The notes below the pieces were generated by a model. The model was not told the origin of the DNA and made no database searches. It saw nothing but the letters and a program-made list of their open reading frames with translations. 31,496 nucleotides of DNA. Origin: Macrostomum lignano. Its lineage: Eukaryota. Both the position numbers and the translations under genes were made by a program. Below are positions 29,210 through 31,384 of the stretch, in pieces. The stretch covers positions 1-31,496 of the forward strand of contig NIVC01004917.1 in the NCBI GenBank assembly GCA_002269645.1, written 5' to 3'. Each line of letters starts with the position of its first letter. Position 1 is the first letter of the stretch.

Positions 29210-31384
29210 TCATGGATCGTGAAAAATCTGAGTAGCCATAATCTCGCCCGTGCTAAGAGTCTGCGTTGCCATAGTGACCATTTTTCTACCACCGTTACAG
29301 GCGGCCGGCGTAGTTGGCGCCTGACAACGCGAGCAGCAGCCGCCGCTTGTCGAACGCGATGGCGTCGGCTGCGGCGGCTGCTGATGCGGCGGTGGCGGCG
29401 GCGGCTCATCCTTGCCTTCGGAGAGGTCGGGCGTCAGCACAGGCGACGGCACGGAGCTGCTAGTCCGACTGTCGGCGTCGTCCTGCAGCACCCGGCGCAG
29501 CTCGGTCTCGTCAATGTCGGACAGGAATTTGATATCGTCGGCCAGCTCGAGGCTGTCCAGCGGTTCGGGGCCCAGCGGACTCTTGACGGCCGAGGCGGCG
29601 GCGGTCAGGGCTCCGCCGGACAGGCGCTCCATCACGGCTCGGTCGGCCTCCTTCCAAACCTGAGTAGCGCGCCATTTAGCGCGGCTCTCCTTTGGCGCCA
29701 GGATGGCGTTGAAGTACAGAATCTCGTTCATCTGGAGTGGGGCGGTTAAATAGGCTAGATTATACGGATGGAGGGGCGGATATGAGGGGCAGAGGATAGG
29801 AGCGGATGAGGCGCGCTGGAGCGGGTATTGTCATTTTCCACGAGGGTAAGATGCTCTTCCAGGAAAGTCTGCACCTCGGTGAGAACACCTCGGTTTTCCA
29901 AGCAGAAATTTGCGCCATTGAGCAGTGCGCCCAGCACCTGCTCCAGGTGAATATTAATAACTTCAATATTAAATTTTACACTGATAGCCAAGCCGCTATT
30001 AAGGCCTTAACCACTGAGAATATCTCCGCTGCTACAGTATCTCAATGCCACCGCAGTGTGCAATCTCTCTCAGTCCTTAACAGGATTAGAATTATCTGGA
30101 CACCTGGTCACAGCAACATCCTGGGCAACGAGCTCGCGGACTCTCTCGCCAAGGAGGGCAGCAACCCAGACGGCAACCACCGTCTGATGAGGCTACCCAC
30201 TCCCAGGTCGCAAAGTCACCCGCCATATCAACAGGTGGCTCCATCAGCAGCACCAGCTCCACTGGAACAGCTGCACCGAGTACAGGCAAACCCGCTCTGC
30301 CATGCCTAACCTGAACAGGAAAGTCTCTGATTATCTGATTTCGCTTAACAGAACCGACCTCAGGGAGATGTGCATGGTCCTAACCGGCTATGGATTCTTC
30401 CAGAGACATATATCGTTGCAAACCGGTTGCCCTCCACCTGTCCTTTCTGTGGCATAGGAGAGGAGACCGCGGAGCATCACGTCACCTTCTGCCCTTACTT
30501 CAACAAGGCGCGGCACAAATACCTCGGCCACCCCCAGCGGATGGACGAGCTGACCACCCGGACAATATCCGTGACCTTCGCGCCTTCATCCGGGACTCCG
30601 GCCAGATTAGGGTCGCCGATGCCTCCACTGCAAACCTGCCGACTACAGGCGGGGACTGGGCGCACCCCCAAGGTTAATCCTTGTGCTCTTTTATTTTGGG
30701 GTTGCGATAGGGCCTCGCGCTCCTGCGCCCCCCCGTCAGTAGTAAGTAAGTAAGTAAGTAGGAGCGGATGAAGGAGCGGATGAGTGGATGAAGGGTGGAG
30801 GGCAGGAGCGGATGAAGGGGCGGATGAGCGGATGAAGGGGTGGAGGGCAGGAGCGGACGAAAAGGGGATATGAGGAGCGGAGGAACGTAGGGGCGGATGT
30901 CTGGTAGGGGTGGAAAGTGGAGTAAAGAAGGGAATAAAACTGATGGAGTCCAAAAGATGGATTCCACTATAAATGGCATTCTAAAATGAATTAATGCCTT
31001 AGTATAATTAGTTCACCTTAAAGTGCTTCTGCAAATCGTCCACGTGTTTAAAGATGGACTTGTCAAAGAACACGTGCTCGTGCCGGCCCAGATCGATGAT
31101 GCCCCACAGTCTGGCGCAGTGGAACACTCGGCCGCGGCGATTGGTCAGCGTCCGGGGCGCGGTTTGATCTACGCCGGCAGAGCCGCCGCCGGCGCCGGAC
31201 TTGCCGTCTCGGTTGGAGCGCGGCCGCCGGTGATGATGATGTTGAGCTTCTGGCGCGCCGGCAGGACACTGAGCCGTCGGCCGGGTGAATGTCGAAGAAT
31301 AGGGACTGTTTGCGCAGGAATTCTTCCAGCTCGATCTGAGTCCAGCCGATTAGATTGCGGGCCTGCTCGGCGCCTTCGCCGGAC
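29210..31384 (-). CDS. Uncharacterised putative RNA-binding protein (LOTUS/winged-helix-like segment, cold-shock/OB-like domain, Egalitarian-type LC8-binding tail); complement(join 31017..31384, 29210..29731), 5' partial, frameshifted
   Basis: After a net frame correction at ~31210-31260, the upstream exon reads [27 protein letters not shown]...[39 protein letters not shown]. It splices in phase 0 (aag|gtgaac...ccactccag|atg) to [26 protein letters not shown]...[20 protein letters not shown]. Confidence 0.75.
29810..30760 (+). mobile_element. 5'-truncated non-LTR retrotransposon (RNase H plus C-terminal CCHC; LOA/R1/I-group-like), degenerate, antisense within an intron
   Basis: RNase H motifs [23 protein letters not shown] and [21 protein letters not shown]; then LTGYG and [18 protein letters not shown] over three frameshifts. 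(AGTA)5 tail at 30741-30760; TSD taggagcggatga at 29797-29809 and 30759-30771. Confidence 0.88.
30761..30905. repeat. Degenerate purine-rich repeat (ggagcggatgaagg-like); the insertion target of the retroelement
   Basis: The same motif family occurs on the other side of the element at 29765-29809. Confidence 0.75.

Follow-up and report, generated by a model that had tools for sequence, protein, structure and literature searches.

A divergent cold-shock-like domain in the central region of an Egalitarian-like protein of the flatworm Macrostomum lignano

The gene described here, a flatworm member of the Egalitarian-like (Egal) family, lies at the end of a 31,496-nucleotide (nt) stretch of Macrostomum lignano DNA (contig NIVC01004917.1 of assembly GCA_002269645.1, hereafter the window), and its closest described counterparts come from flies and planarians. 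By cryo-electron microscopy, Drosophila Egalitarian (Egl) consists of three winged helix-turn-helix (wHTH) modules that are structurally LOTUS-like (ED1–ED3), an exonuclease-homology domain (ExoHD), a domain termed XAD, and a C-terminal dynein-light-chain (DLC) site (NSMB 2026; PMC13186709). The fly dynein light chain (Dlc) promotes Egl dimerisation, which is required for RNA binding and then for association with Bicaudal-D (BicD) (bioRxiv 10.1101/550277). For spiralians, PMC12579938 (Development 2025) named planarian dd_8302 ‘Egalitarian-like-1’, described an Egalitarian-like N-terminal domain of three folded modules in common with Drosophila Egl, and reported an RNA interference (RNAi) phenotype for planarian egal-1. 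The same study described a central region of 67–71 amino acids (aa) in which flatworm, mollusc, annelid, and brachiopod proteins are >50% identical and which occupies the place of the fly Egl exonuclease-like domain, and it put the dynein-light-chain motifs of planarian and fly at 75% identity. In planarians, wounding induces egal-1, a muscle gene whose RNAi disturbs polarised notum expression; Egal-1 co-localises with microtubules (alpha-tubulin), and colchicine both disrupts Egal-1 localisation and causes ectopic notum expression, as egal-1 RNAi does.

Translation of positions 29100–31496 in three frames of the minus strand, which carries the gene, recovered every peptide that the original prediction for this locus had quoted: a wHTH fragment (31362–31288), the start of a cold-shock-like domain ending in HFK (31133–31017), the stretch MNEILYFNA...KWRATQVW (29731–29654), and the C-terminal tail with its TGA (29284–29210). 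Four in-frame pieces of the window translation recur letter for letter in PAA56698.1, with 0 substitutions in 297 codons. This protein is GenBank ‘hypothetical protein BOX15_Mlig021118g1, partial [Macrostomum lignano]’, recovered as P0037 in our family search, and the window covers its residues ~385–681, the C-terminal 297. A word-based search with the spliced peptide found 33 homologues, the best from M. lignano at E = 3e-59 and the flatworm matches named ‘Egal-1 winged helix domain-containing’; an exhaustive search by profile, with E ≤ 0.001 as the limit, gave 275 representative clusters. With homologues that reach E = 3e-59 and pieces that are exact substrings of PAA56698.1, the resemblance goes well beyond chance, and the data show that the region comprises the last two coding exons of M. 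lignano BOX15_Mlig021118g1 (PAA56698.1), a member of the spiralian Egal family. Single-sequence phmmer with the spliced peptide against PDB sequences returned nothing relevant, Egl not being among the matches, and a literature search on the locus tag Mlig021118 gave no match.

The interval 29210–31384 proved to be exactly the in-window coding part of the gene, with 31384 directly following a pyrimidine-rich tract that ends in the CAG acceptor and 29210 closing the stop codon (Table 1). As the original prediction had stated, the N-terminus lies outside the window; the exons for ED1, ED2, and the N-terminal portion of ED3 are beyond 31496. The penultimate exon covers ED3 (the third winged-helix module) over its C-terminal half, then a low-complexity linker and beta1–beta3 of the cold-shock-like domain; the last coding exon encodes beta4–beta5, a disordered linker rich in acidic residues and Pro, and the conserved C-terminal tail.

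The protein itself is not new, because PAA56698.1 appears in Table S3 of PMC12579938 (as ‘Macrostomum ligano Mlig021118.g1, PAA56698.1’) and its layout is described in that paper. The locus had been put forward as a candidate new dynein-linked RNA adaptor; an identical protein with this layout had thus already been published, and taken together with the egal-1 RNAi phenotype this largely amounts to a characterised orthologue of the same architecture. The gene, the family, the layout, and one planarian function are already known, and the protein has a GenBank entry. Neither PMC12579938 nor PMC13186709 nor Pfam names a fold for the central region, so that its cold-shock identity is one modest new point, apparently the only one.

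Structure prediction and, by a transitive route, profile comparison support the central region being a divergent cold-shock domain (CSD) of ~75 residues with an OB fold. AlphaFold2 (AF2) models were made of the 303 residues encoded by the window and of the 78-residue domain alone. In the former, the central domain had a pLDDT >90; residues ~52–78 of that input, in the disordered linker, differ from the reference reading, and the domain is unaffected. The model of the domain alone (pLDDT 93, pTM 0.80) consists of five strands, with a short helix following beta3 and another helix at the C-terminus. When the fold was compared with the PDB by Foldseek, a check that the original prediction had proposed, cold-shock proteins and domains came at the top (Bc-Csp, CspB, Unr CSD1), with S1 and further OB folds ranking after them. 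The match to Bc-Csp had a TMq of 0.65, a TMt of 0.75, and a root-mean-square deviation of 2.4 Å, and with the further matches to CspB, Unr CSD1-2, YB-1, and Lin28B the TM scores across CSDs ranged from 0.60 to 0.75.

Profile comparisons pointed the same way. Family relatives with 2–6 copies of a homologous domain exist, and a profile of these copies (A5) aligned over its full length with the spiralian-only domain profile (A4) in hhalign (99.65%, E = 5e-25). Searched against all PDB sequences, A5 in turn found CSDs only (Unr, 8e-11; CSDE1, 2e-6; YB-1, 6e-5). In the alignments made by hhalign and HMMER, LWGII falls under the [FY]GFI of RNP1 and HVFFD under the VFVH of RNP2, the register that had been proposed for WGII and HVFFD. 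In full, the RNP1 reading is R-L-W-G-I-I against [KR]-G-[FY]-G-[FY]-[IV] and the RNP2 reading V-F-F-D against [VI]-[FY]-[VF]-H, which keeps the Trp and the Phe-Phe of the RNP face. The G-x9-G spacing between beta1 and beta2 is that of the Unr/CSDE1 type of CSD. Across 24 family domains, identity to the window domain ranges from 37% to 88% (71% to Schmidtea mediterranea Egal-1), and one 10-residue stretch in the second half of the domain is nearly invariant in the family alignment. The domain thus resembles those of Unr/CSDE1, YB-1, Lin28, and the bacterial Csps in its predicted five-stranded OB barrel with RNP1 and RNP2 in register, but it differs from them in having LWGII rather than [FY]GFI, VFFD rather than VFVH, and an extra C-terminal helix. 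Judging from its sequence and predicted fold, canonical RNA binding by the domain is plausible; because Ile stands for the second RNP1 aromatic and Asp for the RNP2 His, its mode of RNA binding may nevertheless differ from that of canonical CSDs.

The wHTH-like fragment was likewise borne out, as an Egalitarian-type winged helix (Pfam PF23713, WH_Egal; Table 1) that AF2 models as helix-helix-hairpin with a pLDDT of 83–92; the LOTUS (OST-HTH) profile PF12872 had no match in the window protein at E ≤ 10. The full protein, P0037, has three PF23713 copies (E = 8.4e-54) and no PF01612 exonuclease domain in a Pfam scan, while an arthropod family member (P0108) combines three WH_Egal copies with PF01612 (E = 8.3e-24). 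The two kinds of central domain are mutually exclusive among 163 family proteins: none of the 136 with a CSD-like domain has an exonuclease motif, and none of the 6 with an exonuclease motif has a CSD-like domain. That a CSD sits where Egl has its exonuclease-like domain, as had been suggested, agrees with this distribution and with the position of the two domains, which is the same.

The C-terminal tail is also of the Egl type. Its comparison with arthropod and nematode Egl tails, from proteins that contain PF01612, shows homology by sequence, these exonuclease-type tails sharing the element (arthropod SQTLSTGDIVITKVF, nematode STQTFSTGEIQ). Among 80 distinct family tails, the Q-T...G pattern is invariant and fixed at 16–20 residues from the C-terminus, and the consensus reads [SD][VI][AGS][CTV]-Q-T-[LIV]-S-T-G-[DE]-I-[MLI]-A-T-x-[LIVF]-[YF]-H-[ED]. 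The TQT anchor that had been proposed for LC8, the dynein light chain, is present as a canonical 8-mer in a segment predicted to be disordered and reads as a putative binding site. The tail had further been described as a double TQ tail of Egalitarian type, and both TQs are indeed found here, but only the first is family-wide: at the second, Q occurs in 40 of the 80 tails and K, N, or R in the others. Because half of the tails lack this Q and arthropod Egl has K or R there, the second TQ is not a hallmark of the Egl type. The residues next to it are conserved, and the distal half of the tail may serve something besides a second LC8 contact. Upstream of the tail, a short motif in the linker (29480–29551) is kept in flatworm Egal-like proteins (e.g., GLNLANDIKFLSDDVEEELERILG), mollusc- and annelid-type members being outside this group.

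Given the identity of the gene and its domains, we consider it probable, by analogy with Drosophila Egl, that the protein acts as an RNA adaptor, dimerised by LC8 and linked to BicD, with a CSD in place of ExoHD-XAD. LC8 would bind the TQT tail and dimerise the flatworm protein, and dimerisation would promote the binding of cargo RNA, a task that the winged-helix modules would share with the CSD, which stands in the position of the exonuclease-homology/XAD module of Egl. ED1 would recruit BicD, and then dynein-dynactin, for minus-end-directed mRNA transport. If the central region is a CSD, two branches of Egl proteins put different RNA-binding modules on the same wHTH/BicD/LC8 chassis. The fold would then also give a testable handle on how planarian Egal-1 could select transcripts in regeneration polarity. 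For the possible germline or neoblast role raised in the original prediction, a point of comparison is planarian egal-1, which is expressed in muscle after wounding.

Several observations weigh against this reading. The Pfam CSD profile had no match in the window protein, the A4 profile found no CSD among PDB sequences, and hhalign of A4 with canonical CSDs gave a probability of 5%; because these direct searches found no CSD, the homology rests on a transitive chain of profiles and on the predicted fold. The Ile of RNP1 and the Asp of RNP2 replace residues at canonical nucleic-acid-contact positions. LC8 is a general dimerisation hub (e.g., in PICTS/SFiNX complexes), and a TQT by itself does not imply dynein transport; binding of LC8, BicD, and RNA by the CSD-type members is inferred from the Egl system. 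Lastly, the reading frame is broken in the window's own sequence, a point taken up below.

The two changed contact positions and the failure of the spiralian profile to find CSDs directly would also fit a central barrel that acts as a protein-interaction module, the whole protein then being an LC8-dimerised scaffold or adaptor for cargo other than RNA. OB folds frequently mediate protein binding, and canonical CSDs have nothing that corresponds to the most conserved stretch of the domain, WGIIDLG.HEHVFFD. However, the extreme conservation lies on beta2–beta3 and on a basic SRAKWRAT loop, which correspond to the nucleic-acid face of CSDs; the homologous multi-copy relatives retain [FY]GFI and VFFH; and the domain takes the place of an RNA-binding module of Egl. 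We regard this explanation, which carries the most weight among the alternatives to the RNA adaptor, as unlikely.

Next in weight is a cytoplasmic regulator of translation or mRNA stability in the manner of Unr/CSDE1 or LIN-66, in which LC8 would be only a dimerisation clamp and dynein transport would play no part. Among solved structures, the CSDs of Unr/CSDE1 are nearest to the domain, the LIN-66 CSD acts in eIF3-dependent translation (PMC11184513), and the primary role of fly Dlc is Egl dimerisation rather than motor attachment. Against such a regulator, the full protein retains ED1, the BicD-binding module of Egl, and planarian Egal-1 shows co-localisation with alpha-tubulin as well as sensitivity to colchicine, which disrupts this localisation and mimics egal-1 RNAi on notum; we think it improbable that the flatworm protein works in this way. 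The parallel with Caenorhabditis elegans LIN-66, drawn in the original prediction as a cold-shock-like domain paired with winged helices, stands for the first half only. LIN-66 has a predicted, functionally required CSD within low-complexity sequence (PMC11184513), but the LIN-66 papers, by whose description alone we compared the two proteins, report no winged helices, no relationship to Egl, and no LC8 tail, and according to them BLAST homologues of LIN-66 are absent outside nematodes.

The broken reading frame concerns the exon at 31384–31017. Its homologous reading crosses three frames, passing from -3 to -2 for 10 residues and then to -1 from RSNRDGK on, by way of two 1-nt frameshifts; these were not mentioned in the original prediction, whose first two quoted peptides are frames -3 and -1 of one and the same exon. 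An exon that can be read only across three frames, an RNase H fragment within the adjoining intron, and the existence of near-identical duplicates in M. lignano, such as PAA60161.1, could together be taken to mean that an Egal-like gene has decayed into a pseudogene copy here, with two frameshifts and an intronic retroelement. Window positions 27000–31496 were aligned to NIVC01002588.1, the contig of PAA56698.1, and compared base by base. These last 4.5 kb of the window are 99.6% identical to the reference, with 3 mismatches and 13 gap openings. All but one of the 13 indels are 1-nt deletions in the window, the remaining one being an insertion, and nearly all of the deletions sit in short runs of the same base, whether the DNA is coding or not, a pattern that marks assembly error. 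The reference carries the extra C and G, and once a C (31253) and a G (31221) are put back, as they stand in the GenBank assembly of the same locus, the open reading frame (ORF) is intact. Because homopolymer losses run throughout the stretch, the ORF is intact in the reference, and the 297 codons have no substitution, we concluded that both frameshifts are homopolymer undercalls of the window assembly and that there is no pseudogene. The retroelement, moreover, is intronic and antisense. A pseudogene, last among the alternatives, is thus highly improbable, and the base-by-base comparison led us to drop it.

The same comparison disposed of a more downstream site for the second frameshift by placing the shift at 31221. 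A 20-nt GT...AG mini-intron at the site of the first shift was also considered and found implausible; a 1-nt homopolymer difference accounts for the shift. With single-base homopolymer losses of this kind in the assembly, the reading frames of the window are not reliable as they stand, and other ORFs in it may contain artificial frameshifts.

Within the family, the M. lignano protein shares with S. mediterranea Egal-1, -2, and -3 and other spiralian Egalitarian-like proteins the three wHTH modules, the central region of 67–71 aa, and the C-terminal dynein-light-chain motif; it comes from another species, and it was matched to the family rather than to a single planarian paralogue. M. lignano itself has at least 3 groups of Egal-like paralogues (P0037/P0158, P0001, and P0002/P0019), with PAA56698.1 and PAA60161.1 as near-identical duplicates, and these groups parallel the three planarian egal genes. 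With Drosophila Egl and C. elegans EGAL-1, it has in common three WH_Egal modules (ED1–ED3), a homologous tail of the form xQT[LM]STG[DE][IV], and, by analogy, a presumed logic of LC8 dimerisation, RNA binding, and BicD recruitment. Between ED3 and the tail, however, Egl has an exonuclease-homology domain and XAD where the flatworm protein has its ~75-aa CSD, and the distal TQ of the tail is TK or TR in arthropod Egl.

A third set of relatives consists of proteins with several CSDs or several WH_Egal modules. These have WH_Egal, the homologous CSD of profile A5, and the QT.[ST]TG tail, but they carry 2–6 copies of the CSD and a variable number of winged helices, and their CSDs are nearer to the canonical form ([FY]GFI and VFFH), some with sub-threshold matches to Pfam CSD, S1-like, or DUF7930. 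In five relatives (P0096, P0121, P0155, P0106, and P0039), weak matches were seen to DUF7930 (36 bits, above the cut-off, in P0096), CSD, S1-like, and wHTH_TTC3. The sequence matches hint at a link between the winged-helix and CSD modules of Egl proteins and the wHTH region of vertebrate TTC3/DZIP3-type proteins.

WH_Egal, one or more CSDs, and the same tail occur together in flatworms, molluscs, annelids, and brachiopods, in an acanthocephalan (KAL7669405.1), in the priapulid Priapulus caudatus (XP_014669431.1, with three CSDs), and in a spider paralogue (Uloborus diversus XP_054720420.1), the last two being annotated ‘uncharacterized’; a Branchiostoma protein has winged-helix repeats and one CSD-like domain and lacks the tail. 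Because this combination is spread across phyla, the CSD form may be old, and the distribution hints that arthropods and nematodes carry a derived form with ExoHD. A broader proposal, in which the spiralian central region is an Unr/CSDE1-type CSD in a widespread layout of WH_Egal, CSD, and LC8 tail that may be the older bilaterian state, with ExoHD-XAD as a lineage-specific swap, is one that we advance tentatively, as somewhat less than an even prospect; it is not put forward in PMC12579938, PMC13186709, or Pfam. Under this proposal, the CSD-type proteins would select cargo RNA otherwise than through the double-stranded RNA pocket of fly Egl.

Table 1. Features of the Egal-like gene and its intron in the window
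Feature	Position	Strand	Remarks
Penultimate coding exon	31017..31384	-	368 nt here, 370 nt in reference; acceptor GGCCAG|G at 31386-31385; donor AAG|GTGAAC at 31016-31015
Winged-helix fragment of ED3	31288..31362	-	Match to WH_Egal (Pfam PF23713) over profile positions 32-60 of 69; 29.4 bits with a cut-off of 27; E = 1.2e-6
Apparent frameshift 1 (frame -3 to -2)	31253	-	CC in window, CCC in NIVC01002588.1
Apparent frameshift 2 (frame -2 to -1)	31221	-	G in window, GG in NIVC01002588.1
Cold-shock-like domain, first half (42 residues)	31017..31142	-	beta1, RNP1-like LWGII, RNP2-like HVFFD, short helix; AF2 pLDDT 93-97
Intron	29732..31016	-	Phase 0, GT...AG, 1285 nt; interrupts cold-shock-like domain; junction HFK|MNE agrees with PAA56698.1
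Retroelement RNase H fragment	29806..30309	+	Antisense to the gene, within the intron of the preceding row; PF00075 E = 8.7e-11, PF13456 RVT_3 E = 1.9e-5; outside gene product
Last coding exon	29213..29731	-	173 codons; starts after CTCCAG; exact match to PAA56698.1 residues 509-681
Cold-shock-like domain, second half	29624..29731	-	beta4 and beta5 (26 residues) plus 10-residue C-terminal helix; AF2 strands 46-53 and 62-68, helix 70-77
Short linker motif (24 residues)	29480..29551	-	Common to flatworm Egal-like members; weakly predicted helix 205-213, block-mean pLDDT 62-67
Conserved 24-residue C-terminal element	29213..29284	-	Homologue, by sequence, of the Egl dynein-light-chain (LC8) site
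LC8 8-mer TMATQTLS with canonical TQT anchor	29252..29275	-	Putative site read from sequence; segment with pLDDT <50
Second TQ stretch EIMATQIF	29222..29245	-	Possible second LC8 site; Ile at +1
Stop codon TGA	29210..29212	-	Read from DNA

Next to the RNase H fragment, an ORF at 30370–30753 contains a Cys/His-rich stretch and had no Pfam match. A tandem array of a 56-nt unit (28187–29102; about 16 copies, 88% matches) begins about 100 nt past the stop codon, each unit holding a sequence that resembles the T-arm of a transfer RNA (tRNA), GGTTCGATTCCCA. ARAGORN found no tRNA in the array, which may be a satellite derived from a tRNA or a short interspersed element.

The rest of the window, positions 1–26600, is dense in minisatellites: TRF reported 28 rows, corresponding to about 20 distinct arrays after overlapping periods were merged, with periods of 8–35 nt and also of 56–301 nt. 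Many of the arrays are 300–1700 bp long and show strong strand skew, and because of these skewed arrays most long ORFs in this part are translations of repeats. An ORF at 23388–24134 on the minus strand, in a stretch of 73% GC, had a sub-threshold F-box match (E~5e-3) and may be the first exon of an F-box/leucine-rich-repeat gene. Two exons with fibronectin type III domains (PF00041) were found on the plus strand at 10386–10853 (E = 1.4e-10) and 16510–17118 (E = 7.9e-20), together with a weak match to the C-terminal fibronectin type III domain of DSCAM, which suggests a neighbouring plus-strand gene for a cell-adhesion protein or receptor with large, repeat-filled introns.

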